This document shows, piece after piece, positions 9,439 through 62,806 of a stretch of DNA of 64,000 nucleotides. The stretch comes from Macrostomum lignano. Taxonomy: Eukaryota. A model generated the notes under the pieces. It was not told where the DNA came from. It ran no database searches and saw only the letters and a list, made by a program, of their open reading frames with translations. Position 1 is the stretch's first letter; each line of letters opens with the position of its first letter. The translations under genes and the position numbers were made by a program. The stretch lies in assembly GCA_002269645.1 (NCBI GenBank), contig NIVC01000639.1, forward strand, positions 234,173-298,172, given 5' to 3'.

Positions 9439-9515
9439 GGGGGTTGTAGCCTAGTGGTTTAGAGCGTCGGACTCTCGACTTTAAGGTCGGGGGTTCGATT
9501 CCTGATTCAGGGACG
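9439..9515 (+). other. tRNA-like sequence (SINE head or tRNA pseudogene)
   Basis: A-box TAGCCTAGTGG and B-box GGTTCGATTCC at tRNA spacing; acceptor and anticodon stems do not pair. Confidence 0.55.
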
Positions 9516-9897
9516 TCTAGAGCTAGCACCACTGGACTAGTAGCTAGAATAAAACACCACCCATTTTACGCTAGTGTAGCAACAGCAAGGTGGCAGTTGT
9601 GCTAGCTAAGCAAACTAGGTAAATAAACTAAATAAACTAGTGCGTTCGAGTTGGGGCACTAGGGATAGGGGACTTGGGGGAGAGCAGTGAAACAGACAAA
9701 CGAGTAGAAATGCACAGGGCTTGGGCACCGAGCTCATGACACTGATATGTTCTCGATGCATATTCAGTGGTGTACAATTTAAGAAATTATTCACCCCACT
9801 ACCCCAGGTTTTCCTTGCTCTCTGCCAAGCACTGACAAAGAGTAAATGATGTCTTGCACTGTTATCATTTCCAGCAGCCTCTCAGTGCAAGCTTTCA

Positions 9898-11100
9898 ATG
9901 GTGCATGCATGTTCAGTCTACCAATGCTTAACTCGAGCAACCCAGGAATCTGGAGTGAACTTCCACAGCCAGCCTCTCCAAGACACTACTCTTCTTGAGA
10001 AATGGAAGAGAGCAAACCCGAGAAGACTTTGAGCAGGCAAAGTACTGCAAGATTTGCTCTCGTGATTTTCATCTCCATGACTTCACGGAAGCATCGGTGG
10101 ATCAACGCCACACGCAATAAGAGAGGCGAGTCGCTGTCAAGGAGGAGACTCAAGCCTACAGTGGTTCCATCCATCTGTCTGAACGCTCCCATGAGCTCCC
10201 ATCTAATTGTCATCTGACAATAAGGAACCGCGAGCAACGACAGTGACATTGTCTGAGCGATGGAGAGAGAGAGCAGAGAGAGCTGGAAGAAAGGGTTGGA
10301 GTCTCTGGAAGCAGACTCCACTGTTAGGACGGACCTAAAGGAGATTCAGCGCAAGCTGGAGCAGGAAGCGACCAAGCCAGCTGGACTTCAGACGGCTACC
10401 TAGGACAATAAGCTCTGCGTCCATATGCTAGAGACAGCCATTGTGCCGTGTTTCTTGCTACATCTGCCTGGCAGAAGACCAAGCCAATGGACTGCCGCTA
10501 AAAGCAAGCATTTTCACCTACTGACTAGAGGAAAAACTTTGACTCTCAGCCAGCTTGTGAATTTCATGTCGAGAATCAAGAATTCGACTGAGAATTGGCC
10601 GAGTCGTCACCTCAGACCAAGATCTCCAGGATGCCGTGGAAGACCTCTTGCCGTCTTGGAGGAAGCAAAAAGGCTGACGGACAATCGGACTGTGAGCTTT
10701 GCCTTGGAGCAGCTAAAGCTGAGCACGAAGTCATCGTGCACCAGAAGGTGTTCCAAGGATCTCCTTGTGTTCTACTTGATCTAATCCATCAGTGCCTCAG
10801 CCCTCAGCGTAACAAGACCTACGAGTACTTGGGCAGGATGCCGTCTGCCTCCCGTCTGATCTCACGCTGACGTCCATAACTGCACATCTTCAAGCGGCCT
10901 TGGGCTGAGAGCTTCAAAGCTGTCACGAATGGAGAAGGTAGTGACCCTGTTCATCGGCGAGATCTACATCGCAAGTAGGATTGAATCAATGCCAAAGCAA
11001 CAGGCCAGCAGTCTGTGTTCATGCTATTCAATCCAGTGCACGACTTGAAAACATATTTACAACTTTCACAGCTGAGGAGACCTCCATCTCCTTCCCTCCA
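9898..11100 (+). pseudogene. THAP-domain P-element-like (THAP9-type) transposase remnant
   Basis: MVHACSVYQC...GVNFH...W...CKICSRDF...RLKPTVVPSI (THAP, frameshifted); TYEYL..MPS; EKVVTLFIGEIYI (DEI motif with D to G change). Confidence 0.72.
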
Positions 11101-11231
11101 GCGTGTAGTGACTGGCTGCTAACTGGCTTTTCAGCAGCATTCACTAGCTGTTCCTAAGAGCGCTGTGATCCGCTGCACAGTGGCTCAGTCCACCTGATCT
11201 AGAGAGAGATTTACTCTGTGCTGGGCCTAAG

Positions 11232-11860
11232 TGTTTACTGCCCGATGACTCATCGCCTGAGCGGGCGCGGCAGTCACACTCAATGCCTTCCCCTCCCGCG
11301 CTGAGGAGACATAGCAGGATGACTCGTCACCTGCGCGGGGTGTAAAGGCTGCCTAGAGGGAGTAAACAGGATGACTCATCCGCCCAAGTTCTATTTTTAG
11401 CACAGAAAAGCACGTGACTGTGCACGCACACTGTGCGTGGCCACTGACCTTGAGTCACGCCACTGCTGCGTGATAGGCTTGCCTTATTAGAAAGTCGGCC
11501 TTGGATCACGCATCGCTCGAATGATTCTGAGGACCAAAAAAGGAAGTTTCACGCGCTCACCGCATGAAACTCACGTGACTTTTGGGGGTCTGCTCGGCTA
11601 TAAATACGGAGCATCTGTGAGCCATTTTTCTCCAGATCGCGTTCACTGCGTCGTCTCGCGGAGCATTGGCTAACTCGTGAAGCCTCCTCCGAGCTCTCCT
11701 CTCATCGTTTCAGGTTTTTCAGGTTTTCTGGTTCGAGCAGCATTCTACTAAGTCAATCGACTGTCGAGACATTTTTCAAATTTGCCTTTGCTCCGAGCGA
11801 TTTCGTTATTTTATTTCAGGTGACGGATAGACAACTCTGCCGACGCGTCGAGTCCGCACA
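11232..11860 (+). promoter_or_regulatory. Probable solo LTR / TATA promoter with clustered AP-1 and E-box sites
   Basis: TG...CA ends flanked by CTAAG/CCAAG; TGACTCA at 11246 and 11372, TGAGTCA at 11451; CACGTG at 11411 and ~11572; TATAAATA at 11599. Confidence 0.45.
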
Positions 11861-21800: not shown

Positions 21801-24800
21801 TGAGGATCGGGGAGACTATCAGAGGGGATTTGAGGATCAGGAAGACGATCAGAAGGGATTTGAGGATCAGGGAGACGATCAGAGGGGATTTGCTTTGAGG
21901 ATTAGGGGACGATCAGAGGGGATTTAAGGATCAGGGAGACGATCACAGGGGGTTTGAGGATCAGGGAGACAATCAGAGGGGATTTGAGGATCAGGAAGAC
22001 GATCAGAAGGTATTTGAGGATCAGGGAGACAATCAGAGGGGATTTGAGGATCGGGGAGACGATCAGAGGGGATTTGATTTGAGGATTAGGGGAAGATCAG
22101 AGGGGATTTGAGGATCAGGGAGACGATCAGAGGGGATTTGATTTGAGGATTAGGGGAAGATCAGAGGGGATTTGCTTTGAGGATTAGGGGACGATCAGAG
22201 GGGATTTAAGGATCAGGGAGACGATCACAGGGGGTTTGAGGATCAGGGAGACAATCAGAGGGGATTTAAGGATCAGAAAGACGATCAGAGGGGATTTGAG
22301 GATCAGGAAGACGATCAGAGGGGATTTGAGGATCAGGGAGACGATTAGAGGGGATTTAAGGATCAGGAAGAAAATCAGAGGGGATTTGAGGATCAGGAAG
22401 ACGATCAGAGGGGATTTGAGGATCAGGGAGACGATTAGAGGGGATTTAAGGATCAGGAAGAAAATCAGAGGGGATTTGAGGATCAGGAAGAAAATCAGAG
22501 GGGATTTGAGGATCAGGGAGGTGATCAGGGGGGACACTAATTCTAATATCGATCAGAATCAGTGAAAAATGCTAAAAGCCGCTCACTTTCGATAGTGCCC
22601 GGCCAGCAGCAGCACCCGGCAGATCAGCAGGTGGCGGTGCAGGTCGCAGGCGGCGGGCTCGGCGGCCTCTAGCAGGGCGCAGTAGCGCTCGGCCATGGAG
22701 CTGTAGTCCCCGCACTGGGCGGCGTCCCGCCACAGCCGCAGGAGGCGGTCGCTGGGGTCGGGCGCGTCAAGCTGGTGAAAAGTTTCCAGCACGTCCCAGC
22801 GGCAGAGGAAATCTTCAAGGCGGCCGAGGGCACCGCTGGCCAAAGCGGCGGGCGGGAACTCGTCCAGGGCCCGGTCCAGGCCCGCGAGCTCCGGCCGCTC
22901 GAACTGATCGGCCAGCCGGGACAGCCAGAACTGGGCGCTGGGCTGCTGCAGGGAGCTGGGGGGGCGGCGGCTGGTGCGCTGGACTGGATTCATACATGCG
23001 CAACCTTGGAAATCACCCGGCCGTTTCTATTGGCAACACACACATGTAAGTCGCTATTGGCTGAGAGCAGTCACGTGACTATTATTCAGTCCAATAGCGA
23101 CTTACGTGTGTGTGTTGCCAATAGAAACGGCCGGGTAAATCCTAGGTTGCACCCAGGCCCAAGCATGACTGGATTGCCACTATTTGTGAATAGGGCGGAA
23201 ACTGTGGGTGAATGAGGCGGAAACTGGAGGGTGAATTGGGGGCGGAAACTGTGGGTGAATGGGGCGGAAACCGGAGGCTGAATAGGGCGGAAACTGTGGG
23301 TGAATGGGGCGGAAACTGGAGGGTGAATGGGGTGGAAGGTGAGGTTCAATGGGGCGGAAGGTGAGGTTGAATGGGGCGGAATCTGTGGGTGAATGGGCGG
23401 AAACTGGTGGGTGAATGGGGCGGAAACTAAGGGTGAATGGGGCGGAAAATGAAAAAAAAATGGGGCGGAAAATGAAAAATGAATGGGGCGGAAGGTGAGG
23501 TTGAATGGGGCGGAAAAGCGGGCTGAAGGGGCGGAAACTGGAGGGTGAATGGGGCGGAAAAGCGGGCTGATGGGGTGGAAACTGGAGGGTGAATGGGGCG
23601 GAAAAGCGGGCTGATGGGGTGGAAACTGGAGGGTGAATGGGGCGGAAGGTGAGGTTGAATGGGGCGGAAAAGTGGGCTGAAGGGGCGGAAACTGACCGAG
23701 CAGCCTTTCGCAGCGCCGGATGGCGAAACGCCAGCCAGCGGTCAGGCTCAGTTCTTATTGGCGCCGGCGGCGCTAACAAGGGCGCCAGAGCGCCGAGCAC
23801 GCCGGCCCAAAGCCGAGGCGACCAGCTCCGACGATAGGCGGGCGAATCGATACGATCGGCGCCGCTGCCGAGCCCCGCCGCGCTGCCGGCCTTCTCCGAC
23901 GCCTCTACGCCGTCCTTCTCTGCGAAGGGGCCTCCAGGCGCGGTCAGCGGGCCGCTGCTCAGCAGGCCGACGGCTTCGGACTCGAAGAGGCCGCCATGAG
24001 CTGAGTTGGCCAGCAGGCACAGCAGCGCCTCGGCGACTGGCCCGGACTTTCCATCGCCAGAGTCGAGTTTGGCCGCGTCCTCCACGGCGTCGGCGACAAC
24101 GGAGCGGCACAGCTCGGACAGCGAGTCGCAGTCGGCCAGGCGCTGGCACTGGCGCCGGCGGCTGCGGGCGGCGCTCAGCTGGAGGAACATCGCCTGGTCG
24201 GAGCAGCGGGCCAGCCGGGCCACCTCGGCGGCTGACAGCGGCGGCTGGGGACCCACCTGAGGAGATTATGGATCAGGGACTAGATGGATCAGGGACTAGA
24301 TGGATCAGGGACTAGATGGATCAGGGACTAGATGGATCAGGGACTAGATGGATCAGGGACTAGATGGATCAGGGACTAGATGGATCAGGGACTAGATGGA
24401 TCAGGGACTAGATGGATCAGGGACTAGATGGATCAGGGACTAGATGGATCAGGGACTAGATGGATCAGGGACTAGATGGATCAGGGACTAGATGGATCAG
24501 GGACTAGAAGGATCAGGGACTAGATGGATCAGGGACTAGATGGATCAGGGACTAGATGGATCAGGGACTAGATGGATCAGGGACTAGATGGATCAGGGAC
24601 TAGATGGATCAGGGACTAGATGGATCAGGGACTAGATGGATCAGGGACTAGATGGATCAGGGACTAGATGGATCAGGGACTAGATGGATCAGGGACTAGA
24701 TGGATCAGGGACTAGATGGATCAGGGACTAGATGGATCAGGGACTAGATGGATCAGGGACTAGATGGATCAGGGACTAGATGGATCAGGGACTAGATGGA

Positions 24801-34074: not shown

Positions 34075-35889
34075 TATTATGGTTAATATTAAGTTATTAG
34101 CTATGATCAATGACAATAACAAGGACCATTAGAAGTTACCACTGACATCGGCCTATCATTATTCTATGCTTCAAAACTTATAAATATAATGTATGATGGC
34201 AGAAAGCTATTGTATTAGTAGTAGTAGTAGTAGTAGTGGTAGTAATAGTATAATTATGGCCAAAATGTTTTATCATAGACAAACTCACTGACTAAAAGCT
34301 AAAACCTATCTAAGTAATGCTTTTTGAGAGTACCAGTCATTTCAATGACAAGTTGTTTTAGTGATAGATGTTTCAATGGCAAAAATCATTTTGGCATGAT
34401 TTTGCCATGCTTTTCTCTTTGACTTTGACACTTTGTGATAGACACACTTCATTTTTGATGGAAAATTAAATATTTCATAAGTATAATCATTTTAGTGATA
34501 AGAGGCACTTTATAATATTAGTGTGTAATTATTTTGTGAAGATTTATATTTTATACATATATTTATAAATTTCTATCAAAATATTAATATATTTAAAAAA
34601 AGAAATCAAACTAATTATATTGTTTTCTTTTGTGCAAATTGTTTTGAATTGTTCTAAATATTCAGAATATTCAAACATATACATATGCAACCCTGATTTA
34701 TACTGATTATATGACTTACTTTTTGACCAAAAATGTGATTTACCTATGAACGAAATGCTAATAAAAATTAATGCAATTTGGATAAATGGCAGAAATACTG
34801 CCTTATTAAGGCTAAATACCCCATCATATAATTAGTACTACTTAAGAGGTTCAACCCCTAGCTTTTTATAGGAAGTCACTGGAGACCTGGTTTAAGCAGC
34901 TAGAATCACAATTTACCCTATTGGAATAAGTTGACAAAATGCGGACGACTGTCTGTCGCATTTTTGGATTCTCCTGCTGTCGCGTTGCGTGACAGTGGTG
35001 TCAAGTGGTGTGTCACGTCGCGCGACACTGGAAACCTGGTGTCATCATGCGTCGTGTCGCGTGACACGACACAACGAGACGCGTAAGTGTGGCAACTTGG
35101 CGGCTAGTGTCATCATGTGTTGCATTGCGGCCTAGATCTGCATCCAAAACCTCGCAAACTGTGTTTCATTGTAATATGTTCACAGTTGTTTCTCGGTATT
35201 TAAATGTTTTAAACATGTTTGATAAAAACTAATTCTTGAATTGTTCTTTTTTATTTTGACTGTAAAATAACTAATACTTTAAATATAATTTCTAGAAAGG
35301 TTACTTGTTAGTTACAATGCATGCGCTGTTTTTCTAACTGTTGTACCTTTGTTGTTTTACTGTTTATTGTTTTTAAATTTCATTTCTTTTTCCGCAAAAT
35401 TGAAAGGAATACTCTTGTCCCTCGCTCCATGGTCTTGGTGTCGGGAGTGAACAGCAGAACAAGAATTGTCAATTGCAACGTGGCTGCTGTGCCGTCCTTC
35501 CCCCCCCCCCCCTAGTCATTCGGTCAACAGACATCGGTGTTGCGTCGCGCATCGCTGCCCCCAGTCAACAAAATTTGGTGTCGCGTCGCACTTTTGAGGG
35601 TACAATTTTGGCACCTGTGTCGCGCATCTGCAGGTTTTTGAAACTTATTCCAATAGGGACAATTCAGACTCGCCAACCTCACCATACATGCGCAACAGTC
35701 GGCCGAGTCGGCCGATCCGGCCGACCGATTTGGCGGCCAACCAAGTAAGTCGCAAAATTGATTAACCGCCAAAAAAAAACGAAAAAACAAAAGACGAAAA
35801 AGGGGAAAGGAAAAGGAAAAAATGAGAAAAAGGGAGCAAAGAGAAAGAGAAAAACACAAAAAGAGTTGTAAGTGCTGTAAGTTGCAGCA

Positions 35890-37420
35890 CTGAAGACAAG
35901 GTAAGTCGCACCGAGGGCAAGCTAAGTCGCACCGAGGGCAAGCTAAGTCGCAGCAGGACCGAGCTAAGTCGCATCGAGGGCGAACTAAGTCGCACCGAGC
36001 GAGAGCTAAGTCGCACCGAGGGCGAGCTAAGTCGCACCGAGGGCAAAATAAGTCGCACCGAGCGAGAGCTAAGTCGCACTAAGTCGCAGCAGGACCGAGC
36101 TAAGTCGCACCGAGGGCGAGCTAAGTCGCAGCAGGACCGAGCTAAGTCGCACCGAGGGCGAACTAAGTCGCACCGAGCGAGAGCTAAGTCGCACTAAGTC
36201 GCAGCAGGACCAAGCTAAGTCGCACCGAGGGCGAGCTAAGTTGCAGCAGGACCGAGCTAAGTCGCACCGAGGGCGAACTAAGTCGCACCGAGCGAGAGCT
36301 AAGTCGCACTGAGGGCGAGCTAAGTCGCAGCAGGACCGAGCTAAGTCGCACCGAGGGCGAACTAAGTCGCACCGAGCGAGAGCTAAGTCGCACTAAGTCG
36401 CAGCAGGACCAAGCTAAGTCGCACCGAGGGCGAGCTAAGTTGCAGCAGGACCGAGCTAAGTTGCACCGAGGGCGAACTAAGTCGCACCGAGCGAGAGCTA
36501 AGTCGCACTGAGGGCGAGCTATGTCGCAGCAGGACCGAGCTAAGTCGCACTAAGGGCGAGCTAAGTCGCACCGAGGGCAAAATAAGTCGCACCGAGCGAG
36601 AGCTAAGTCGCACTAAGTCGCAGCAGGACCGAGCTAAGTCGCACCGAGGGCGAGCTAAGTTGCAGCAGGACCGAGCTAAGTCGCACCGAGGGCGAACTAA
36701 GTCGCACCGAGCGAGAGCTAAGTCGCACTGAGGGCGAGCTAAGTCGCAGCAGGACCGAGCTAAGTCGCACTAAGGGCGAGCTAAGTCGCACCGAGGGCAA
36801 AATAAGTCGCACCGAGCGAGAGCTAAGTCGCACTAAGTCGCAGCAGGACCGAGCTAAGTCGCACCGAGGGCGAGCTAAGTCGCAGCAGGACCGAGCTAAG
36901 TCGCACCGAGGGCGAACTAAGTCGCACCGAGCGAGAGCTAAGTCGCACTAAGTCGCAGCAGGACCGAGCTAAGTCGCACTAAGTCGCAGCAGGACCGAGC
37001 TAAGTCGCACCGAGGGCGAGCTAAGTCGCACCGAGCGAGAGCTAAGTCGCACCGAGGGCGAGCTAAGTCGCAGCAGGACCGAGCTAAGTCGCATCGAGGG
37101 CGAACTAAGTCGCACCGAGCGAGAGCTAAGTCGCACTGAGGGCGAGCTATGTCGCAGCAGGACCGAGCTAAGTCGCACTAAGGGCGAGCTAAGTCGCACC
37201 GAGGGCAAAATAAGTCGCACCGAGCGAGAGCTAAGTCGCACTAAGTCGCAGCAGGACCGAGCTAAGTCGCACCGAGGGCGAGCTAAGTCGCACCGAGGGC
37301 GAGCTAAGTCGCACCGAGCGAGAGCTAAGTCGCACTGAGGGCGAGCTAAGTCGCAGCAGGACCGAGTAAGTCGCAGCAGGGCCGAGGTAAGTCGCAGCAG
37401 GACTGAGTTAAGTCGCAGAG
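35890..37420. repeat. Subterminal higher-order array of TAAGTCGCA-cored 21-bp units
   Basis: Several 21-bp variants plus a 10-bp spacer unit; 220-bp higher-order period (36383 vs 36603). Confidence 0.93.
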
Positions 37421-37621
37421 CATCTTTAGGATTATTAGGATAGGATTAGTTTAGGATGAATTTAATGTATCACTTACTAGGGTGTAGGCTACGTGTGCAT
37501 TAACGCATCAATTTGAAAAATTAAGAATTACGAAGCCAGAAATGGCTAAGGAATAGAAATAGGGATAGAATAACTTATAAGCAGTAATTTTTCAGCCCTA
37601 TTACAATTGCAAATCATACTT

Positions 37622-40600
37622 TTAATAATATTTAATTAGCAAATTAAAACTGCAAGATTCTAACGGTCTTATATATGAACTTAGAAGAACTGTAGTCTGA
37701 CCAGAGATTGTCCTTTCTGTAGCGCGTTCTGAAGCATCTGCATCTCTAGAGTCTGAATCAGAAAGATGGTCCTCTGTTTCAGATTCAGAGCTGTCATCTT
37801 CCATTCCAAACCGTCTAGCAAGAGGTATGATTCTCGAACTGTATGTAAAGACAGTATGTAATGTTTCAGCATTAGGCAATAACACTGGGTTGAGCACATT
37901 AAATATTGAGTAGTCATCCTCAGGAAAATAATTACGCAGCTGATCAATTATGCTATCAATGATTCGACTGCGAATCTCATCCAGTGCTGGATAAGCTCCC
38001 ATGTCAACAACACTGCCACGTCCACTAGCATCAAATAATCTATTTCTTAGAGATCTGTCTGCAGCAGAACCTGGTTGCTTCAACTCAAACCTCTCTGTTG
38101 GATCGCTGCTTCCAGGGCCGGAAGGACAAGCAAAGTTAGAATAAGATAGGTCTCTTGTGTGACATCCTGAATGGTATTCCAGCTGCGGATATCCATCTGC
38201 AGTTCCCAAAACTCGACGACACTTGCAGGAAGCCAAAAAGTCCACAATGCGAGGACCATTGTTCGTTTTTAAGGTTTCTAGTGAATGGATAAGGTTAGTG
38301 TGGCGTTCTTGCAAGCCAATAAATGTACCCTTGGCTCTTTGAAACTGCAAGGACTCAAATTCCAGTAATTTTAGAATGTCCATGAGAAATAGATGTAATG
38401 AATAATACCGGACATTTTGCAATGTTTTCAATAATCCAGAGGCAGTTGCTTTACTTTCGTCATCAAAGCCTGAGGAAGGTGATTTGATATTTTCTAAATT
38501 TGTCAGAAGCAAGTAGTACGACTTTCGAATCACATCAAGAGCAGACACTTCCGATGCAACCCACCTGATGCGATATATTCTTTTTAATTCATAGAAAACC
38601 AAGTTGAGTGCTTCCGAAGTTTGTGCCAAAGATGCCTTACGTTTAACAGCGTGGCTCATATAAAATTTGTGTAGAGAATTTATATTCTTATCGAGATGTT
38701 GCATAAATGGGAAGATTTCAAAGGCATGATAGATTGAAAGTTCTAACTTATGCGCTGCACAATGGTGCTGAAAAAATTGTTTGCTAGCCCAAGGCCTCAG
38801 TTGACTTATTAATCCCACTCGACTTCCTGTCATTACGGATGCACCATCAGTTGTCACCCCCAATAGCCTTCGTTTGATTTCATCTTCTAGCTTGTCATCC
38901 GAAAATAAACGGATGAGAAGTTCATAAATGCTTCGTCCAGTCTCTACTTCAGTCAGACGTTTAAACCGATAAAAAACATCAAATGTTGGCTGTTTTCAAG
39001 AACTCTGAAGTATATCATGACGTAGCTGTTTGAATGAATATCAGACGTTGTATCTAGTACAATAGAAATCGGAAGATTGTCAGCACTTTTAATGTAATTC
39101 ACAAATGTCCGATGCATTGTATTACTGATTGATTCCACCATTGCTGCGGCACTTTTGCGATGCTTATGATGGCTCCCCATATCCAACCCATTTTTTACTT
39201 GTAAATCAATCATATTTGGATGAGCACTGAATGGAATATTAGATTTGACTTCGGCATAAACTGTTGTCAAAACTCGGGCTGTTATTTCATCTCGTTTAGT
39301 TTTAGCTAGTCTAGCGGCCTCATTCATCTGTTTGAGTTGCTTTGCAAGAACTGAAGTATGTTTTTCCTTCATCCACTTTATGGCGTCACTGAAGTGTATT
39401 TGATGAATGTTCCTGTAGTTTTCTTCGTACGCTATCTTTTGCATGACCTTTGGGAATGTAGCCTTGTTCTGTTGCAAAAGTTAACTTACGTTGGCTCTCT
39501 AGATTTGTCTCCTTTTTCTTATGTGCATTCAAAAATTTTCTGCAGATCCGACATTGTATTCCAGATCTTGATAGATCTTCGGTGTTTTGAACATATTGAA
39601 ACCATGTCTTCATTTCTTGTGACACAAATTTTCTTGAAAATGATCTGCAATGGTCAAATTAGAGAATATTTTGGGATTTGGACTATTTGTGAGTATCTAA
39701 AAGCAATATGCTAATAAGTGCAATACACAATACACTATACATTAATTTACAGTTCGTCAGTTTCCATTTACTTACTGTGACTGGTGCATCTCCAAAGAAT
39801 GTAACCACTCCTCTCGAAAACCAGATGTATCCTCCCAGTCCTTTTTAGGGAAAACTTCAATATTTTCGCCCATCATAGAGGAAGACGAGGGCTTTGATGC
39901 TGAAGTGGCTAGACATGCGTCTGCAGATGTGCTTATGCATGGTATTTTTTTTTGCGATGGCCCTGCTTCTGCAGTATTTACTTGTACTATTTCAACATCA
40001 CCTGAACCCCTTGAGTCGCTCGAATCTAAATCAACAATAGGACTTTGGCAAAGTGATCGTTTCGTTGATTGTCTTTGAATATTTACTTGCCTAATAATTT
40101 CCACTTGTAGTTTGCTTGTTTGCTGGTCATTCTCCAACAACTCTCTTCTTTCCTGTACATTTGCAGCAGAGCAAAAATTAGAAGTTTCTGCAGCAGCAGT
40201 TTGAACAGCATGATCTCGATTAGCTGCTATTTGCTCTGAAAATTCATAGGACCTGGCCAATTCACTACGGTGTGAGCTTTCAGAACATGGAGCTGGAGCA
40301 GGAGCTAGTCGCATTTCGATTCTTTCTGTTGCTGATGAAGCAGATGCTAATGCTGAGTCTGCCAATGTACCTGCTTCTCTTGAAGGTGTATTTATGATGG
40401 CTTCAATATTGTCCTCTAAAATCCAATGAGCACCTGAGCAGTCATTTTCTCTACCTGGAGTCAACTGTCCAAGTTTCCACCTTGTAAAAAGCAAAGGCTT
40501 TCGTAACTCACTGCTGGATTCAGGGCACCGGTTTATTGAATAGTCCTCATGACCAAGTTCATCCCATTCTCTTGCTGGCTTTAAGATGTAGTTGGGCTTG

Positions 40601-41403
40601 TCTCTTAGCCTACGATAAATGGACTAAAAAAATGTGCACCTGTTATTTTGTGTACTTCGTGCATAGATGATCATGTCATGCACATTGTTCCTAATAATTT
40701 CAGCTAATGAGTTATCAATGATAATTTTATCTTCATAAACAGGTCTTCTTTGTGTTGCATGCATTTTAGCTAGTCGCAGTTTTCCAATGCTACTGGCAGT
40801 TGTGGAACTTGAACTGTCCGATTCTGATCTAGAAAAGTCTCGTTGATACAAGAGAACAATGGCCATAGCACTTTTACCATTCCCATTCTTTAATGCATTT
40901 GGTTCTGTTGGAATTGTCTTACTAGCAGACTTGAAAAAATCAATGATGGATGACTGCGATGATCCACTAGGAGCGGAACTTGGCAGCCCATGTCTAGTTT
41001 TTCCCTGATACCCAATAGATGTATCGGTAAAAAACATATCTGCTGCTTCCTGCTTCTCTTTTGATGCAATAACAAAGAAACTGCTGTCCGTTTTGAAGCC
41101 CGAGGACCGATAGAAGTCAGCAGAAAATGAAACCACAGGTCGTCTAAAATCGCCGCTATATTCTTGAACTCCAATCAGAAGAAAATCACGGAGTCTCACT
41201 GGCACTGATCCTAATAGCATTGCAGTTGTGGAACAAACTTTCTTCAGCTCAATGAACTCTGAAAATTCTTGAGATCCAATATTAGGCTCATCAGTATTTA
41301 ACTCATTTATAACAATTGAGCACTCACTCTCAGCTAGAATACCATTGATAGCTAGGATGCCACTTAGAATCAGTAGGCAAAGACAACTAAGGCTGTACAT
41401 CAT
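37622..41403 (-). pseudogene. Signal peptide + lamin-tail-like domain spliced to a hAT transposase; exons 41403-39776 and 39644-37622
   Basis: IVINELNTDEP...EFIEL and SINRCP...TPGREN.C in one frame broken by a single TAG (40624-40626); phase-2 intron 39775-39645; then WFQY..CRIC..H finger, SIVLDTTSD, TTDGASVM, HCAAHKLEL, RWVASE; frameshifts at ~39390 and ~39000; C-terminal catalytic Glu/dimerisation region not seen. Confidence 0.8.
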
Positions 41404-42142
41404 TCTGTGAAAGATTAAGTCGAGTATATGATTTTGGTGATAAAATAAAATTGATTTATGAGTATTACTATATAAATAAAACATTTAAAAGCCCTTACCT
41501 TTACCAATTCATGTACAGAAAGTAAGTGTAAATACAACCAATTGCCTTGGTAGTTTAGTTATATGCTCGTATCAGATGCAGGCAGACAGCATAGGCTGCC
41601 AAGGTGCTATAAGTTAAGGTTAACTTTCACTATTTGGCTTTACAGACTGCTTTTATCGCTGCATGCATTGACTTAGCCTTAGCTTGTGCCATCATACTCA
41701 TACAGCTATATATACATATGTATCTCTGCCACTCCCCACTTTTGCAACCTTACACTGTACAATCATGCCTAAAACACTCCGTGTCAAGTGTACTGTTCTA
41801 GTGCCACATGGGGTACAAATACGATTAGGAATGACAAGAGTCAAAACCATACATGCACAATAGTTGGCCGATATGGACGACTGATTTGGCGGCCAACCAA
41901 GGTAAGTTGCAAAAATGCCCACCCAAATAAATACCAAAGTAGTATTAAGTAGCTGACGAAGCATTTTGCCTTAATAAAGACAGTTATAGTTACTCCTGCC
42001 GTTTACCCAAAGTTGCGTTAATTTTGCTTTTAGGTTTTTTTCATGTAAGTCGCATTTTTGGCCGAAAACTACGTCGCATTTTTGTTAAAACTAAGTCGCA
42101 CGGCCGACCAAATTTTGGAGGTTGCGCATGTATGAACCTCAC

Positions 42143-45100
42143 TAGCAGCTCCACCAAGTACCATTATGCCTTAGCAACCCTCCCAAAGGACATCACATGC
42201 TAACTCAACCTCAATGGCAACAACTACAATGCATTGAAGAAGGTGGTGGGCAATAGCCTGCACTTTGCGCACTAATTGGCATCAGCTAATCAAGGAAGCC
42301 CTTTCTGCCATGGAACTTGGCCCTCGGAGACCAAGCCAACTTGTCAATGAGAAAATGCCAATTTACTGAGGTCAGCCTGAAGGTTGACGATGCCATAGTC
42401 AAGTCATGCCTCATCTCTGTGTTGCCGCCCCACATTTGCTCCGCACTCATTGGACATGAGCACAGCCTACTAGATAATTTTCCAAGATTGTGGACAGCAT
42501 GCTCGCTGTCTCTAGTCGACCCTCACTATTTGCTGACATCAATCAGTTGTCCACTGCTGCTAATGCAGAGCAGCAACTGGCCTGGCATCTCTCCTGGCGA
42601 CCTGACCCTCCGGCTCACAATGCCCAGCCTCACAGATGGCAGTGACCACTTGTCTGTAATTCACATATCTACTATGCTGGCAGAGCTCTAACTTGCCGAC
42701 CCTGGTGCAAGTGGCCAGGTTTAAAGCCATCGAACATACTCCACCAAGGTCAGCCAATACCTGCCCAGTCTCGCATGGCTTTGCCAACCCCAAATGAGTG
42801 AGTCATGTGCAGTGGCCGGGCCATGACAACGTACAGGCCCGCACACCTATCATTCCCACTCAAATACTAAGTTCCTCTGTTTTATTCCTTGTTGACACCA
42901 GTGCGGAAAAATCCTTACTGCCTCTGTGTTTCGTCCCATTTAACCTCATCACCCCCTGTAACGTTCAACTTTGTGGGGTCAGTGGACACAAGGCTGCACC
43001 CATGGGCAATGCAACGCTTCATTTTTGTTAAAAGGTTTACGCCGCACCTTTCAATTCAACTTCATCGTCGCAGACACAGCCCCCATTCTCGGATTGGATT
43101 TTTTATTTCATTATGGACTGTCCATCAACATGGGAGCCAAGTGCCTTCGAGATCCCCTGACTTCGCTGGTTGCGCCGCTCAATTTCGATGCCAAGCAAGA
43201 GTTTCGACCACTGTCAATCCACATTGTATCAGACGTTGACGGTAGTGCAATTTTCGGCAAATATCCTGGGCTGACCGAGCTCTGGATTACTCAATCCTGC
43301 CAACTACTCCGGTGCAGCATCGCATCATCACGTCAGGCGAACCAGTCTACTGCAAGCCGCGCCCTCTCTCGCCTGCAAAGTTCGATGTGGCCAAGGCAGA
43401 ATTTGACAAGCTCCTTCAGATGGGCATTGTCCGCCCGTCCTGCAGCCCTTGGGCGTCACCACTCCATATGGTCAAGAAGGCTGACGGATCATGGAGACTC
43501 TGTGGGGACTACCGCGCTTTGAACAGCATGACGGTGCCCGATAGGTGCCCGATAAAACCCACTCCGCATATCCGGCATTTTCACCACCAACTTCGTGGCA
43601 GCAGCGTGTTCAGCAAATTGGACTTGGTCAAGGCCTACCATTTCATACCAGTTGCCGAGGAGGATATTTCCAAAACAGCAATCTGCACGCCATTCGGCTC
43701 TTTTGAATACGTCCGGATGCCATTCGGGTTGCGCAACGCCGGCAGCACATTTCAACGCTTCATCGATTCGCTGTTTCGAAACCTGTCCTGTGGCATCACA
43801 TACGTTGACGATATACTGATTCAAAGCAAGTCAGAGGCAGACCATCACAACGACATTCAGATCGTGCTGCAACGCCTACATAAAGAGGGGCTCCGAGTTC
43901 AACCCGCAAAATGCCAGTTCTTTCAGAGTAGCATCGAATTTCTCGGTCATTTAGTCTCCAAAGACAGAGTCCAGCCACTACCATTCCGCGTGGAAGCGCT
44001 GCGACAGCTGTCACCTCCAGCAGACTTCAAGAGTCTTCAGCGCGTTCTCGGCATGTTCGGTTTCTACCTGTGCCACATTCCGAAATACGCAAGCAATGTG
44101 CAACCGCTGCGATCGCTCACCGAAATCGATTATCATTGGCAATCTGAACATGACGCCGCCTTCCGAGAGCTCCAGGATAGCCTAGCGGCAGCGGTGACTC
44201 TCGCCTTCCCGACCCCAACTGGTTCATTCACCATCACGTCGGATGCCAGCTCGTTCACATTGGGCGCCAGTTTGCACCAGAATATAGACGGCGATTCGGT
44301 CCCCATTGCGTTCTATTCACGGAAACTCACCAAAGCGTAAACGGCATACAGTACAGCGCGTTCGACCGTGAACTTCTAGGCGTGTTCGCTGCCGTCAAAA
44401 CATGGCGACACATCATTCACGGCCACCCCACGACCGTGTTTAGCGACCACAAGCCGTTAGTCGGTGCATTCAACAGCAATAAGGAGCGCCTATCCGATCG
44501 GCAGCAGCGCCAGTTGGCCACCATCTCAGAATATGTGATCGACATCATTTACATCCCGGGAGCCAAGAACGTGGTCGCCGATACCTTAACTCGTGACACC
44601 GTCAAACCTGGCAAGCACACAGTGAACACTGTCCAATCAGAAGACGTGTACACATTGCATTTGCCCGCAGATCTCCCTGCGATCGCCAAGGCACAGCGAG
44701 AAGCAGGGCTCACGAGCGGTGACCGTTACCGCCCATTCGATGTCGGATTATTAGATTGTCCCCTGTACTGCGAAACTTCGCAACCAAACCCGCGACCGCT
44801 CATACCAGAGCACATGCGCCGTCAGGTTGTGCTAGCACTGCACAACATCGCCCACCCAGGTGTGAAGGCCACGTAGCGTTTAGTCGCCCATCGTTTTTTC
44901 TGGCCATGCATGAAGTCAGACATACAGCGCTGGACGGCAGAATGCACACAATGTCAATCAGCAAAAATTGGTCGTCATGTTTGCCGTCCACTGCACCACC
45001 TGCCTGCACCTACACAGCGGTTCACAACGGTCTGCATGGATTTAGTCGGACCGCTCCCGGCGCCGGACCCAACCGAAACAGCTGTACCCCAGCCGCGATA

Positions 45101-46263
45101 TTTACTAACCATCGTGGACTCGTACTCCCGCTGGGTCGAAGCAATCCCATTGCAATCGATCACCAGTACGGTTGTTGCACAAGCCTTCGTTGCCCACTGG
45201 GTTTGTCGATTTGGCCCACCGTTAACACTCATCACAGACCAAGGAGCTCAATTTCGCTCGGAATTAATGGCAAACCTGGTGAAACTTCTCGGCGTCCATC
45301 ACATCCGCACGGCCGCATATAATCCTAAGGCCAACGGCATGATCGAGCGAGTTCATCGCACACTGAAGGTGAGCCTCAGAGCTCGCGGCCGGTGCTGGCT
45401 TAACCAGCTGTCCATCGATTTATTCGGATTGCTCATTAACCCGGACGACCAGAGTCACTCGCCATTCTCAATCGTCACAGGAGAACAGCCGCTAGTTCCA
45501 CCGGTTACAACTAATGACGTCGACCAGCGTCAGCTGTCGACTCAACTACACGACCTGTTTTTCCCGTACCGCCTGCCGCGGACCCGTCAGCAGCCTGTCC
45601 ACATACCTCCGGAGCTGGAGTCCTGCGAGTTCATGTGGCTCCGAGTTGACAGTGTTAAGCAATACTCGAGGCGCCATATCAAGGACCCTACAAGGTGTTG
45701 CGACGCTCAGCAACCACCGTGACGCTCGTCATAAAAGGCAAGCCCCAGGCCGTTTCTATCGAGAGAGTGAAGCCGGCAGTGCTACCAGGAGACAGTCAGC
45801 GCCAGACCCGAGCAATGACGAAAGAGGCACGGCCGGATAAGCCAACGACTAATACCCCTGCGACGAAACATCGTCCCGCGAAGGAAGCCCAATGAGTTCG
45901 TTTTTCCGAGAAGCCAACAGTTCACGTTATTGATTATTGATCAACAATCCCTTATCGAACAATCAACTAACAAACAGAAATTAAATTAACTTTACTGATC
46001 GCCAAACATCGTTTATAGTTGTTCGCTTTTCCATTGGGGGAAGTGTTTGTAGTGCCTTGTTTCCCACTGTCCTTGCGTAATAAAAGTACTTTTTGTTGAG
46101 TGCCCACAAGCTAGGTTGTCTATGACCCAAACTCCAACTTTCGGTTTCAGCCCCAAAGTAACTGTACTTTATTTTTATTAAATAGACGCGATCGCCCCCA
46201 GCCGAGGTTTAACATTCGCTCAACTTAATTAATCGTCTTCATCTTTTGGTAGCCAGCGCTACA
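42143..46263 (+). mobile_element. Ty3/gypsy LTR retrotransposon, decayed; 5' part disrupted by the hAT insertion
   Basis: gag remnant KYHYALATLP; protease FLVDTSAEKS; [18 protein letters not shown]; RNase H ITSDASS; integrase MDLVGP, ITDQG, NGMIERVHRTLK; several stops and frameshifts. Confidence 0.93.
46044..46263 (+). repeat. Probable 3' LTR of the gypsy element
   Basis: Follows polypurine tract GGGGGAAG (46036-46043); TG(TAG)...CTACA termini; no matching 5' LTR found. Confidence 0.55.
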
Positions 46264-47099
46264 CTACCTTTGTATTCCCTTGGGTAGGAATTTTGCAACT
46301 TATCCCTGATTACCACAATTTATAGTGGCTGAATTGGCAAGGTTGGCTAGCAGCTGCGCATGTATGTTTTGATGCAAACCATAAACCTATAGAGAACAGG
46401 AAATGCACGACCACAAGAAAAGCAGAGATATTCAATGGACATTGGATTTGGATCTGAAAACAATTTCAAAAGATTGCAACTCTGTATTTGTAAATAAACA
46501 AAATTAAGTAAAGCAATACTTAACTATTTCAGAAAGTTATAAAATTTTAAGTTGAATGAAAATATTCCTTAAGATTTGCAAAGTAATTTTCTATTTAAAA
46601 ACAGAATGGCTATCACTAAAAAGGTATTTTTCTTGTTACCAAAATGACTTGCTTCACACCAAAAGGACTGTCACCAAATGTCTTGTCACCAAAATGACTA
46701 TAATGCATTTTTTGGGCAAAGTTATTAATGGATTAGCCTTCAAATTTTATAGTTTCTAATCCCAAATATTCAGTTAGTCTGACTTGAATTAGTTTTTTTA
46801 ATTCTAAATCTAATTCTTTTAATATTATTATTTTCTTTTAGATCCTATTTAAAGGATAATAGAAAAAGGTTGATCATTTTTTGAACAATATACATTATTT
46901 AAATCAGAAGATTTAGGTTCAATGCACATATATTTTAAAGCATTTTTATATCTGCATTTACTATGAAAAATAAATGCTTCTATTGCTTTTAAAGATACAT
47001 TCTAATAAGGTTTTATTATCTAGATCGATATCCAATTTTGCTCTCTTGACCCTAGGTTGATGTCCTTCAAAACATTTTTTTATTTTTTGATCTAGGTTG

Positions 47100-51064: not shown

Positions 51065-52729
51065 ATGTCCTGCCCGCCCACCTCGGCCGTCCGCATCCGC
51101 ACCTACCGGCCTACCGAGGCTGAGTTCGCCGACTTCGCCGCCTACGTGTCGGACACCATCGAGGCCACCGGCGGTCACCTGGCCGGCATCTGCAAGGTGG
51201 TGCCGCCGGAGTCTTGGCGGCCCCGCCAGGCCGGCTACGAGGACCTCAGCCGGATGTCCATCCCGCAGCCAATCCGGCAGCGGATTGTTGGCACCGACGC
51301 GGGAGCCTACCAGCTCTGGAATGAGACTCTCAAGTCTCTGACGCTTGAGCAGTACAAACTGCTGGCTGAGAGCGATGTTCACAGGTGAGACCCGCGGTGC
51401 TGCTTTTCCCTCACAGTCCCCCTCCCCGCAACCCGGGTCTCCGCCCCCCCCCCCCGCAAACCGCATCTCCTGCCCTCCGCAACCCGCATTTCCGCCCCGC
51501 AACCCGCATCTCCTCCCCCCTCACAACCCGCATCTTCATCGCTACAAACCGCAACTCTTAGGCCGCCGGCCCGCTGCAGCAGCCCGGAGCAGCTGGAGCG
51601 CAAGTACTGGGCCAGCCTGACGCTCAACCCGCCAATCTATGGCGCCGATGTCAGCGGCTCGGTGACGGACGCGGACCAGCCGCTGTGGAACATGCGCCGT
51701 CTGGGCACCCTGCTGGACAGTCTGGACCAGCGCATCTCCGGGGTGAACACACCCTACCTGTACTTCGGCATGTGGAAGAGCACCTTCCCCTGGCACACGG
51801 AGGACATGGACCTGTACTCCATCAACTACCTGCACTTCGGCGCCGCCAAGCACTGGTACGCCGTGCCGCCGGCCAACGGACGCCAGTTCGAGCGCCTCGC
51901 TGAGGCCTTCTTCGGCTCCTACAGGGCCGACTGCCCGGCCTTCTTGCGGCACAAAACCTCCGTGCTCAGCCCGCAGCTGCTGCGCCGCCATGGCGTCCCG
52001 TTCGACTCGGTGGTGCAGCGCCAGGGCGAGTTCATCATCACCTTCCCGTTCGGCTACCACTGTGGCTTCAACGCCGGCTTCAACTGCGCCGAGAGCACCA
52101 ACTTTGCCAGCCGACGCTGGATCGACTTCGGCCTGGCCGCCCGACTGTGCCGCTGCCAGCCCGACAGCGTTGTCATCGACATGGCCGCCATCGTGCGCCG
52201 GTTTGGCGGCGCCGCCAAATGTGACTCCGGCAGCCACAAGCGGCCGCTGCCTCAGGGCCGGCACCCCGCCGAGCTGGAGGCCGCTTCGAGTAGTCGCCGG
52301 TGTCCGCGGCAGCGAGTCGGCTCCACTGACGGTGGGGACAGACCTGCCGCTGAAGCAGTCCGCTCAAAGCGGCGTCGGAAAGTACAGTCATCTTCCGGTG
52401 CCGACACTTCAAAGGATGCCGACATTTCAAAGGATGCCGACACTTCAAAAGATGCCAACATTTCAAAGGATGCCGACACTTCAAAGGATGCCGATATTTC
52501 AAAGGATGCCGACATTTTGAAGGATGCCGACATTTCGAAAGATGCCGACACTTCAAAGGATGCCGACATTTCAAAGGATGCCGACATTTCAAAGGATGCC
52601 GACACTTCAAAGGATGCCGACATTTCAAAGGATTCCGACACTTCAAAGGGTGCTGACATATCTGTGCCATCGGAAGCGCCGCGGAAGGCCGTCGCAATGA
52701 ACCTGTTTGACAGGCTGCGCTCGCTCTGA
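51065..52729 (+). CDS. KDM4: KDM4/JMJD2-family histone demethylase, JmjN + JmjC only; exons 51065-51384 and 51562-52729
   Basis: Jmj[12 protein letters not shown]...GICKVVPP; phase-2 intron; [63 protein letters not shown] with intact Fe ligands. Confidence 0.95.
52399..52660 (+). repeat. Coding 18-bp repeat giving (AD[T/I]SKD)n in the KDM4 tail
   Basis: About 14-15 in-frame units inside the ORF. Confidence 0.9.
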
Positions 52730-59555: not shown

Positions 59556-60114
59556 TTAGAGTGGGCTTTGAGTGAGAGCAGAGTTGGGCCTGTCAGCCGA
59601 AGCGGTTGATTTTGGGATTTCGTGGTTTTTTGCTTCCCAAAATCATCCCTGCTCAAACAATGCGCTGCCTGGCTGGCAACCGGAAACCGGCCGGCTGTTC
59701 CGCTTCACACAGCGCGGGCAGGTTGCTCCCGAGCCCCGCTTTGTTCCCAGGAAATGCGAGATGGGAGAATGGGGATTCTTCGGCCAGCGCGGGACTGGGG
59801 ATCTGGACGGGAGGCTGGGACGAGGCGGTGAGAAAGGAAGACGGGACGAAAAACATTCCGGGTCCGGCTTTTTGAGAGGCGCAGGCCGGGGATGCTGGGA
59901 GCAACAACTGATGGAGCTGGCAGTCCTTGTCCCCATTGTTCCCCAGTCGGATTGCGACGTCTCTTCTGGAAGCAGAAAAAAATCTTTCAGGTAGAGCGCG
60001 GAACAATTTTCGGCGGCAAACAGGGCTTGGATTTCCCGAACAGGGGGGTGGGAGATTTATCCCCTGCGATCTGACAGCTGCGTGACTTCGTGCGGCTGAA
60101 TTCCTCAGGGCGCG

Positions 60115-62806
60115 GCTGGGGACTGATTGAGAACCTGTTTTGGACATGGCTGGGGGCTGATTGAGAACCTGTTTTGGACATGGCTGGGGGCTGATTGAGA
60201 ACCTGTTTTCGACATGGCTGGGGGCTGATTGAGAACCTGCTTTGGACATGGCTGGGGACTGATTGAGAACCTGCTTTGGACATGGCTGGGGGCTGATTGA
60301 GAACCTGTTTTGGACATGGCTGGGGGCTGATTGAGAACCTGTTTTGGACATGGCTGGGGGCTGATTGAGAACCTGTTTTGGACATGGCTGGGGGCTGATT
60401 GAGAACCTGTTTTGGACATGGCTGGGGACTGATTGAGAACCTGTTTTGGACATGGCTGGGGGCTGATTGAGAACCTGTTTTGGACATGGCTGGGGGCTGA
60501 TTGAGAACCTGTTTTGGACATGGCTGGGGGCTGATTGAGAACCTGTTTTTGACATGGCTGGGGACTGATTGAGAACCTGTTTTGGACATGGCTGGGGGCT
60601 GATTGAGAACCTGTTTTGGACATGGCTGGGGGCTGATTGAGAACCTGTTTTGGACATGGCTGGGGGCTGATTGAGAACCTGTTTTGGACATGGCTGGGGG
60701 CTGATTGAGAACCTGTTTTGGACATGGCTGGGGGCTGATTGAGAACCTGTTTTGGACATGGCTGGGGGCTGATTGAGAACCTGTTTTGGACATGGCTGGG
60801 GACTGATTGAGAACCTGTTTTGGACATGGCTGGGGGCTGATTGAGAACCTGTTTTGGACATGGCTGGGGGCTGATTGAGAACCTGTTTTGGACATGGCTG
60901 GGGGCTGATTGAGAACCTGTTTTCGACATGGCTGGGGGCTGATTGAGAACCTGTTTTGGACATGGCTGGGGACTGATTGAGAACCTGTTTTGGACATGGC
61001 TGGGGACTGATTGAGAACCTGTTTTCGACATGGCTGGGGGCTGATTGAGAACCTGTTTTGGACATGGCTGGGGACTGATTGAGAACCTGTTTTGGACATG
61101 GCTGGGGGCTGATTGAGAACCTGTTTTGGACATGGCTGGGGACTGATTGAGAACCTGTTTTGGACATGGCTGGGGACTGATTGAGAACCTGTTTTGGACA
61201 TGGCTGGGGCTGATTGAGAACCTGTTTTGGACATGGCTGGGGGCTGATTGAGAACCTGTTTTGGACATGGCTGGGGACTGATTGAGAACCTGTTTTGGAC
61301 ATGGCTGGGGCTGATTGAGAACCTGTTTTGGACATGGCTGGGGGCTGATTGAGAACCTGTTTTGGACATGGCTGGGGCTGATTGAGAACCTGTTTTGGAC
61401 ATGGCTGGGGACTGATTGAGAACCTGTTTTGGACATGGCTGGGGACTGATTGAGAACCTGTTTTGGACATGGCTGGGGGCTGATTGAGAACCTGTTTTGG
61501 ACATGGCTGGGGACTGATTGAGAACCTGTTTTGGACATGGCTGGGGACTGATTGAGAACCTGTTTTGGACATGGCTGGGGGCTGATTGAGAACCTGTTTT
61601 GGACATGGCTGGGGGCTGATTGAGAACCTGTTTTGGACATGGCTGGGGACTGATTGAGAACCTGTTTTGGACATGGCTGGGGGCTGATTGAGAACCTGTT
61701 TTCGACATGGCTGGGGACTGATTGAGAACCTGTTTTGGACATGGCTGGGGGCTGATTGAGAACCTGTTTTCGACATGGCTGGGGACTGATTGAGAACCTG
61801 TTTTGGACATGGCTGGGGACTGATTGAGAACCTGTTTTGGACATGGCTGGGGGCTGATTGAGAACCTGTTTTCGACATGGCTGGGGGCTGATTGAGAACC
61901 TGTTTTGGACATGGCTGGGGACTGATTGAGAACCTGTTTTGGACATGGCTGGGGACTGATTGAGAACCTGTTTTGGACATGGCTGGGGGCTGATTGAGAA
62001 CCTGTTTTGGACATGGCTGGGGACTGATTGAGAACCTGTTTTGGACATGGCTGGGGGCTGATTGAGAACCTGTTTTGGACATGGCTGGGGACTGATTGAG
62101 AACCTGTTTTGGACATGGCTGGGGACTGATTGAGAACCTGTTTTGGACATGGCTGGGGCTGATTGAGAACCTGTTTTGGACATGGCTGGGGGCTGATTGA
62201 GAACCTGTTTTGGACATGGCTGGGGACTGATTGAGAACCTGTTTTGGACATGGCTGGGGGCTGATTGAGAACCTGTTTTGGACATGGCTGGGGCTGATTG
62301 AGAACCTGTTTTGGACATGGCTGGGGACTGATTGAGAACCTGTTTTGGACATGGCTGGGGGCTGATTGAGAACCTGTTTTGGACATGGCTGGGGACTGAT
62401 TGAGAACCTGTTTTGGACATGGCTGGGGACTGATTGAGAACCTGTTTTGGACATGGCTGGGGGCTGATTGAGAACCTGTTTTGGACATGGCTGGGGGCTG
62501 ATTGAGAACCTGTTTTGGACATGGCTGGGGACTGATTGAGAACCTGTTTTGGACATGGCTGGGGGCTGATTGAGAACCTGTTTTCGACATGGCTGGGGAC
62601 TGATTGAGAACCTGTTTTGGACATGGCTGGGGGCTGATTGAGAACCTGTTTTCGACATGGCTGGGGACTGATTGAGAACCTGTTTTGGACATGGCTGGGG
62701 GCTGATTGAGAACCTGTTTTGGACATGGCTGGGGGCTGATTGAGAACCTGTTTTCGACATGGCTGGGGACTGATTGAGAACCTGTTTTGGACATGGCTGG
62801 GGGCTG
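60115..62806. repeat. 34-bp minisatellite (GGCTGGGG[G/A]CTGATTGAGAACCTGTTTTGGACAT)
   Basis: About 79 units; stop-free on the minus strand, which explains the 873-1035 aa ORFs. Confidence 0.98.

Follow-up and report, generated by a model that had tools for sequence, protein, structure and literature searches.

A hAT transposon family of Macrostomum lignano with a predicted signal-peptide-like leader and a divergent lamin-tail domain ahead of its transposase

DNA transposases are nuclear enzymes, and those with acquired N-terminal accessory domains carry BED or THAP fingers, which are nuclear and DNA-binding; to our knowledge the known accessory domains of transposases are all DNA-binding fingers of this type. 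The window described here, a stretch of 64,000 nucleotides from contig NIVC01000639.1 of Macrostomum lignano (assembly GCA_002269645.1, forward strand positions 234,173 to 298,172), contains at 35683-42134 a hAT DNA transposon with a comparable modular N-terminal addition to a conserved core, although this one is of secretory type and includes a leader. The closest described elements are the DUF4371 / FAM200-ZBED5 / KIAA1586-like (Buster-like) hATs, with which it shares an 8-bp target-site duplication (TSD), short terminal inverted repeats (TIRs), a putative N-terminal zinc finger, a DDE core with an insertion domain and, in sister copies, a hATC region. It differs from them in approximately 540 extra N-terminal residues, made up of a hydrophobic leader, a region resembling the lamin-tail domain (LTD) and a linker. 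The nearest relatives without this N-terminal domain (P0008, P0014, P0015 and the KIAA1586-like P0011; about 25% identity) begin with the usual zinc-finger / DUF4371 region.

Two further systems bear a likeness to the extra region. In the amphioxus Branchiostoma floridae, protein LOC118427361 (P0144) also has a signal peptide followed directly by (V/I)INE(L/V)N.D.P..(E)(F/Y)IEL, together with LVDxxVY, SxxRC and PTPGxxNDC blocks. It possesses eight PF00932 units (E-value 7.5e-95) and a transmembrane (TM) segment, whereas the transposon has a single unit with two insertions of approximately 30-40 amino acids (aa), extra conserved Cys residues, no TM anchor and a transposase after it. The order of signal sequence, LTD and DNA-cutting enzyme is also found in the bacterial extracellular nucleases ExeM, NucH and Xds. 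In ExeM the LTD lies between signal sequence and nuclease, and in-vitro activity is reduced or lost without it; a proposed role in membrane association is cited by the same authors (PMC6085458). Chromatin binding has been reported for lamin tails (PMC2120604). The bacterial enzymes differ from the transposon in being prokaryotic and truly extracellular, with an OB-fold and an unrelated EEP catalytic domain, the likeness being one of architecture.

The element and its gene, which lies on the minus strand, have the following features:

35683 to 42134, minus strand for the gene: hAT element over its full length (6452 bp) with TIRs and TSD, a decayed and internally deleted copy
42135 to 42142, no strand: TSD AACCTCAC on the gene-5' side, with its twin at 35675-35682; perfect 8 bp, read directly
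42121 to 42134, minus strand: TIR CATACATGCGCAAC at the gene-5' end, exact match
35683 to 35696, plus strand: TIR CATACATGCGCAAC at the gene-3' end, exact match
41332 to 41403, minus strand: signal-peptide-like hydrophobic leader MMYSLSCLCLLILSGILAINGILA, 24 aa, starting at Met 41403
40414 to 41331, minus strand: LTD-like domain (ESECSIVINELN...EFIEL ... NRC ... TPGRENDCSGAHWILE), from hhalign against amphioxus units and an AlphaFold2 (AF2) model; sub-threshold in Pfam
40624 to 40626, minus strand: premature stop TAG in the LTD-like domain, GAG>TAG by G>T
39776 to 40413, minus strand: linker, the remainder of exon 1, with predicted long helices, a decayed basic cluster and the conserved KDWEDTSGFREEWLHSLEMHQ motif (from 39843)
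39645 to 39775, minus strand: intron of 131 nt, GT-AG, phase 2 (CA|GTAAGT...TTGCAG|A), with an in-frame TAA inside the donor
37622 to 39644, minus strand: exon 2, zinc finger and DDE / RNase-H-like core, from motifs and homology to P0003
39604 to 39521, minus strand: zinc finger, W-x-Y...C-R-x-C motif, kept in the family
39057 to 39040, minus strand: core motif LDTTSD, exon 2
38860 to 38831, minus strand: core motif GVTTDGASVM, exon 2
38764 to 38738, minus strand: core motif HCAAHKLEL, exon 2
38572 to 38549, minus strand: core motif RIRWVASE, exon 2

Exon 1 (41403-39776, minus strand) comprises the leader, the LTD-like domain and the linker. It is read across two open reading frames (ORFs), 41484-40624 and 40494-39772, which are in one frame with the TAG at 40626-40624 as their sole separation. 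Directly after the leader comes ESECSIVINELNTDEP...EFSEFIEL, with IVINELNTDEP...EFSEFIEL located at 41331-41245; further on, the product reads SINRCP (40539-40522), then LTPGRENDCSGAHWILE, with LTPGRENDC at 40464-40438. The basic cluster of the linker is PSQKKIPC (39960-39937), where relatives have RKR or KKKR. The exon-1 frame ends ...HQSQ-TAA, the last exon-1 base being 39776 and the first exon-2 base 39644. Joining the exon ends at these two bases (...TCACA and ATCATTTTC...) keeps the frame into ...HQSQSFSRKFVSQEMKTWFQY...CRIC, and the continuation QSFSRKFVSQEMKTWFQYVQNTEDLSRSGIQCRICRKF... is the zinc finger of the transposase. The first-pass annotation of this locus had claimed a TIR- and TSD-bounded element, two ORFs sharing a frame around a single TAG, a hydrophobic leader followed by INE...EFIEL and SINRCP / TPGREN.C motifs, and a GTAAGT...TTGCAG phase-2 intron at 39775-39645 joining the frames. 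Each of these is present in the sequence, with CATACATGCGCAAC at both ends and the 8-bp AACCTCAC duplication on both sides, and its coordinates are all correct.

Two sister copies were available for comparison, L006 and L007, which are the loci of M. lignano proteins matching the window transposase (P0003 and P0004). The perfect 14-bp TIR is present at both ends in all three copies, and the sister copies have perfect 8-bp TSDs of their own (CTTGGGTT in L006, AATTTAAA in L007). L006 carries a 5895-bp element, positions 7113-11518 of the locus being collinear with the window copy at 98.5% identity; the element of L007 (5245 bp) represents a subfamily approximately 70% identical. In both, the LTD exon lies upstream of the transposase and inside the TIRs and TSDs of that copy, contrary to the possibility, raised in the first-pass annotation, of sister copies lacking the upstream ORF. 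The phase-2 intron sites are common to the window, L006 and L007, while L004 has the donor only. Direct alignment of the window copy with L006 gives just 23 substitutions over approximately 4.5 kb, with separate lesions in each; the Macrostomum family is therefore young. The window insertion appears to be recent.

A wider set of relatives was collected with HMMER using an exon-1 profile (cut-off E<=1e-3), giving at least 184 homologues of the N-terminal domain, counted as sequence clusters. Transposase homology in the same ORF was found in 47 of the 153 of these that were examined for it, including, uninterrupted, all 25 with a length of at least 700 aa. Several have hATC (Dimer_Tnp_hAT) at the C-terminus, and the distant relatives P0022, P0028, P0031, P0032, and P0061 possess N-terminal domain, zinc finger, DDE core and hATC in a single ORF of 1000-1250 aa. 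P0006 (924 aa, 35% identity), which came from a search with the transposase, has N-terminal domain, HQ motif, zinc finger and DDE core in one uninterrupted ORF, and its contig (L005) has the INE...EFIEL start and hATC in neighbouring frames. A search with exon 1 itself gave two homologues, P0001 (92% identity) and P0002 (53%), with genomic ORFs ending at the same GTAAGT. A further homologue search with the family alignment gave, among the candidates listed, five proteins, all of them already in the set. A third gene structure is seen at L008, where the LTD ORF is followed by a small intron and then by an exon ending ...WATTSYFNPDWLNQIQMHQ; an in-frame intron of 68 nt separates this exon from a complete 751-aa transposase. 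The 68-nt intron sits right after the HQ motif, 4 nt upstream of the position of the window intron.

The junction is also conserved. In the family the WEDTS-HQ motif is always found directly next to the zinc finger, profile module c (positions 505-552) recurs immediately before the finger, and the distance from HQ to the W-x-Y of the finger is 15 residues in the spliced window product, a spacing also found in P0006 and P0028, which have no intron here. The intron of the 70% Macrostomum subfamily is still GT-AG and phase 2, with a length of 105 nt vs 131 nt in the window, and the stretch from the acceptor to the first exon-2 Met is conserved (YFSRKFVTNEM vs SFSRKFVSQEM). Exon 1 is under purifying selection, as judged by the ratio of nonsynonymous to synonymous substitution rates (dN/dS), which is 0.22 between window and L001 (0.17 over the LTD part) and, with dS saturated, about 0.2 between L001 and L004 (approximately 0.13 over the LTD part). 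Because of the single-ORF relatives, the conserved intron phase and first residues of exon 2, and this purifying selection, the fusion of LTD and transposase is predicted to be the native state of the family and more than a feature of this one copy. Between the options left by the first-pass annotation, a fusion or a captured cargo gene, the long single-ORF relatives and the kept intron favour the former, and a separate cargo gene is not favoured.

The transposase part of the window copy is 98% identical to BOX15_Mlig001790g1 (P0003) and 68% identical to BOX15_Mlig021755g1 (P0004) of M. lignano. The element is a hAT because P0003 has Dimer_Tnp_hAT (PF05699) above the Pfam cut-off (27 bits vs 21.4) and distant relatives have DUF4371 plus hATC, an example being P0014 (DUF4371 E-value 3e-18, Dimer_Tnp_hAT E-value 4e-12); hATC is also present in P0028, P0032, P0061, and P0071. 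By sequence the transposase is placed in the DUF4371 / FAM200-ZBED5 / KIAA1586-like group. A Pfam search of the window pieces and of the frame-repaired transposase gave nothing significant, zf-BED on the window protein (E-value 0.064, 13.7 bits) lying below its 20.6 cut-off. PF27073 is listed in the precomputed record of P0003, and a Pfam search of P0003 gave no match to it.

As regards the N-terminal domain, LTD is the most recurrent sub-threshold Pfam family among 56 members. The family profile matches the amphioxus protein P0144 in HMMER, and when 69 transposon domains are compared with 11 amphioxus units in hhalign, profile against profile, the probability is 99.6% (E-value 2.1e-24) over 182 columns, covering the whole 183-aa amphioxus unit with the two insertions on the transposon side. 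The blocks common to both are (V/I)INELNADNP..EYIEL, FVIGS, LVDAIVYSR, SLSRC, and PTPGxxNDC. An AF2 model from the 56-sequence alignment is mostly beta, with a mean predicted local distance difference test score (pLDDT) of 76 that exceeds 90 over most of the domain; a model from four sequences reaches a pLDDT of only 34. The AF2 model has no match in BFVD by Foldseek, and a phmmer search of PDB sequences with the amphioxus protein gave only one match, insignificant and unrelated (E-value 0.79). The domain is thus best described as a putative divergent LTD, by homology rather than by Pfam membership, and the assignment to LTD made in the first-pass annotation stands by profile-profile comparison and falls by the Pfam PF00932 threshold.

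The leader was scored as a stretch of 12 aa directly before the domain with a mean Kyte-Doolittle value of 2.0 or more, and by this measure 53 of the 74 N-complete members have it, vs 0.3% of internal control segments. After the hydrophobic core there usually come a few polar residues and a Cys 2-3 residues ahead of (V/I)INE, the leaders typically ending ...A/G/S-x-x-C. By hydropathy the leader appears to be a signal-peptide-like trait of the family. The near-invariant columns of the domain include three further Cys residues, C275, C312, and C341 (P0001 numbering), to which the recurring Cys just ahead of (V/I)INE is additional. No TM or stop-transfer segment was found between the LTD and the zinc finger. 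In the linker, roughly half of the 19 members checked have a basic cluster resembling a nuclear localisation signal (NLS), which is RKR in P0001, KKKR in P0002 and KKI, decayed, in the window. Predicted secretory-pathway and nuclear signals would thereby occur on one polypeptide, which is a paradox.

The window copy itself is decayed. The codon at the site of the premature TAG is GAG in L001-L003 and GAA in L004 and L007. Two small deletions, one of 2 bp near 39392 and one of 1 bp near 38977, shift the transposase frame and account for the three-frame pattern of exon 2, and a 506-bp deletion at approximately 37699 has taken out the C-terminal hATC coding region that is present in L006 and relatives; hATC gave no tblastn match anywhere in the window. 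The first-pass annotation spoke only of a repaired product; the two frameshifts and the 506-bp deletion were not spelled out there. A tiny intron around the TAG (AG|GTGCAC...TTTTTAG|) was considered and rejected, being 18 nt only at a site where relatives have a plain GAG or GAA codon. The sister copies have other lesions: in L006 (8563-8578, 9957-9958) the LTD has a 39-bp deletion and a frameshift, and 2 bp are inserted before MIDLQ; in L007 (8079-8990, ~9560) the LTD exon lacks its first half and the linker contains a stop. The lesions differ from copy to copy, and taken together the copies would allow an intact element to be inferred. Judged by its sequence the window copy is dead and non-autonomous; since both ends and the subterminal repeats are kept, it is at best mobilisable in trans.

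Beyond the gene, the element has two repeat features:

35902 to 37417, plus strand: subterminal array of 21-bp repeats (unit CTAAGTCGCACCGAGGGCGAG), approximately 72 units, native to the element and about three times longer than in L006
41848 to 41861, plus strand: inverted internal copy of the TIR with 2 mismatches, bounding a 287-bp MITE-like unit with the 5' TIR (MITE, miniature inverted-repeat transposable element)

The 9-mer TAAGTCGCA occurs 74 times in the window vs 0.3 expected, every copy being inside the hAT element: 71 lie in the 21-bp array, one near the 3' TIR (35746) and two near the 5' end (42046-42100). These repeats are candidate subterminal binding sites of the transposase. 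The first 287 bp of the element (41848-42134) end in the inverted TIR copy and approximately 55 bp of 3'-subterminal sequence, with the same layout in L006 (7117-7402), and therefore form a built-in MITE-like unit at the 5' end. The TIR motif CATACATGCGCAAC has 5 matches in the window vs 0.4 expected. Further copies are found at 22991 (plus strand), followed by a 46-nt, 98% hairpin (23015-23060 / 23091-23136), and, with 1 mismatch, at 46366 on the minus strand (46353-46366); both probably belong to the same hAT family, as MITEs or as fragments.

The hAT insertion is adjoined by pol remnants of a long terminal repeat (LTR) retroelement, with RVT_1 and RNase H at 43312-44340 and an integrase core at 44910-45722, all on the plus strand. 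A probable host-gene exon lies at 51662-52729, an ORF with a strong JmjC hydroxylase domain (E-value 9e-42). Three overlapping minus-strand open frames of 1035, 935 and 873 aa are present at 59653-62794, the longest without a Pfam match; strong GC and AT skew here points to a repeat array and not to a gene.

The explanation considered probable is that the window holds a dead copy of a hAT whose clade natively encodes leader, LTD, linker and transposase as one protein, the module having been captured and then kept by selection. The native protein would be approximately 1100-1250 aa in length, consisting of the leader, an LTD with near-invariant Cys residues, a helical linker with the NLS-like cluster, WEDTS-HQ, the zinc finger, the DDE core and hATC. 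In Macrostomum the half from leader to HQ is one exon, predicted to be joined by the phase-2 GT-AG intron to the transposase exon; in other lineages the protein is encoded by one ORF. Leader and LTD would go back to a single capture early in the history of the clade, the donor being a gene that encoded an LTD-repeat protein, secreted or on the cell surface, of the amphioxus kind.

A number of observations count against this explanation. Pfam LTD (PF00932) has no match in the window protein and is below threshold in every member, reaching even sub-threshold level in just 5 of 56 (best E-value 0.008). When the whole 576-aa model was compared with the PDB in Foldseek, the only matches were weak ones to Ig-V domains (E-value ~0.01, probability <=0.5), with no lamin tail among them. 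With a cleaved signal peptide and no stop-transfer segment, the whole transposase would end up in the lumen of the endoplasmic reticulum, in conflict with a nuclear enzyme. TIRs and TSDs were not identified in the AT-rich sequence around the distant single-ORF loci L005, L009, and L010, so that mobility there is a matter of homology. No spliced full-length Macrostomum protein was found in the protein-collection search, the predicted splice resting on genomic sequence, and the exon-1 frame in Macrostomum stops at the TAA within the donor, meaning that from an unspliced message only the LTD protein would be made. Finally, all that is said here of function we infer.

Some of these observations would fit a transposon with two genes, in which leader and LTD form a separate secreted cargo protein, the transposase starts from the exon-2 Met and the in-frame layout is incidental in Macrostomum. 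A signal peptide would be sensible on such a protein, the TAA embedded in the donor ends the exon-1 frame in the window, L001 and L004, no junction-spanning protein came from the protein-collection search, and both gene callers and the M. lignano annotation give the parts as separate proteins (P0001; P0003, P0004). However, all 25 long relatives are single ORFs, an NLS-like cluster is located in the linker, WEDTS-HQ abuts the zinc finger without exception, and the residues from acceptor to Met are conserved as protein, with phase kept, in a 70% subfamily whose intron differs in length; two genes are therefore considered unlikely.

It is very improbable that the N-terminal domain is no true LTD and instead an unrelated beta-rich domain with convergent INE..EFIEL and TPG..N motifs. 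The Pfam scores, which never reach the gathering level, and the Ig-V matches at the top of the Foldseek list are in line with this, as is the absence of a match to PDB sequences in a profile search with the family alignment. Nevertheless, the hhalign alignment extends over the full amphioxus unit including the LVDxxVY, SxxRC and PTPGxxNxC blocks, the amphioxus protein is itself a strong PF00932 match, and HMMER alone already connects the two. Least credible, and close to being dismissed, is an artefact in which a hAT has inserted beside or within a host gene that encodes a secreted LTD protein; adjacency alone speaks for it, but the exon is found inside TIRs and TSD at three unrelated loci, and the window and L006 copies are too similar, at 23 substitutions, for this.

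If, as in the favoured explanation, the fused module has been kept by selection, it should serve the element. The most likely role, which is put forward tentatively and by analogy, is that of an accessory binding module which may help the enzyme to engage DNA, chromatin or a membrane-associated structure; the leader would then give inefficient or dual targeting, and no more than a portion of the protein would reach the nucleus, directed there by the NLS-like cluster. Less likely, and somewhat doubtful, is a leader which mainly sequesters the transposase in the secretory pathway and so limits its activity. It is quite unlikely that the signal peptide is a working one by which the transposase, or the LTD half from an unspliced message, travels the secretory pathway. 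In that case the element could use secretion and uptake, for example from soma to germ cells, between individuals or between species, which would be the DNA-transposon counterpart of envelope or fusogen capture in retroelements and Mavericks.

A literature search gave no paper linking LTD with hAT or any other transposase and no name for the architecture, in agreement with the first-pass annotation, whose author was not aware of a description. The source records of 29 family members include none with a descriptive name (2 of the 29 are labelled 'hypothetical protein'), and the M. lignano annotation covers the transposase half only. A secretory-type N-terminal module in a hAT clade appears to be unprecedented. 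Under purifying selection, a whole clade keeps a leader and a Cys-rich extracellular-type LTD joined in one polypeptide with an NLS-like cluster and a catalytic core. Should the leader work, it becomes a concrete question where and how the transposase becomes active or moves between cells; should it not, the LTD fold would still gain a eukaryotic DNA-cutting partner, parallel to the bacterial LTD-nucleases. The Macrostomum family is young and, as M. lignano is transformable, experiments on these points would be feasible.

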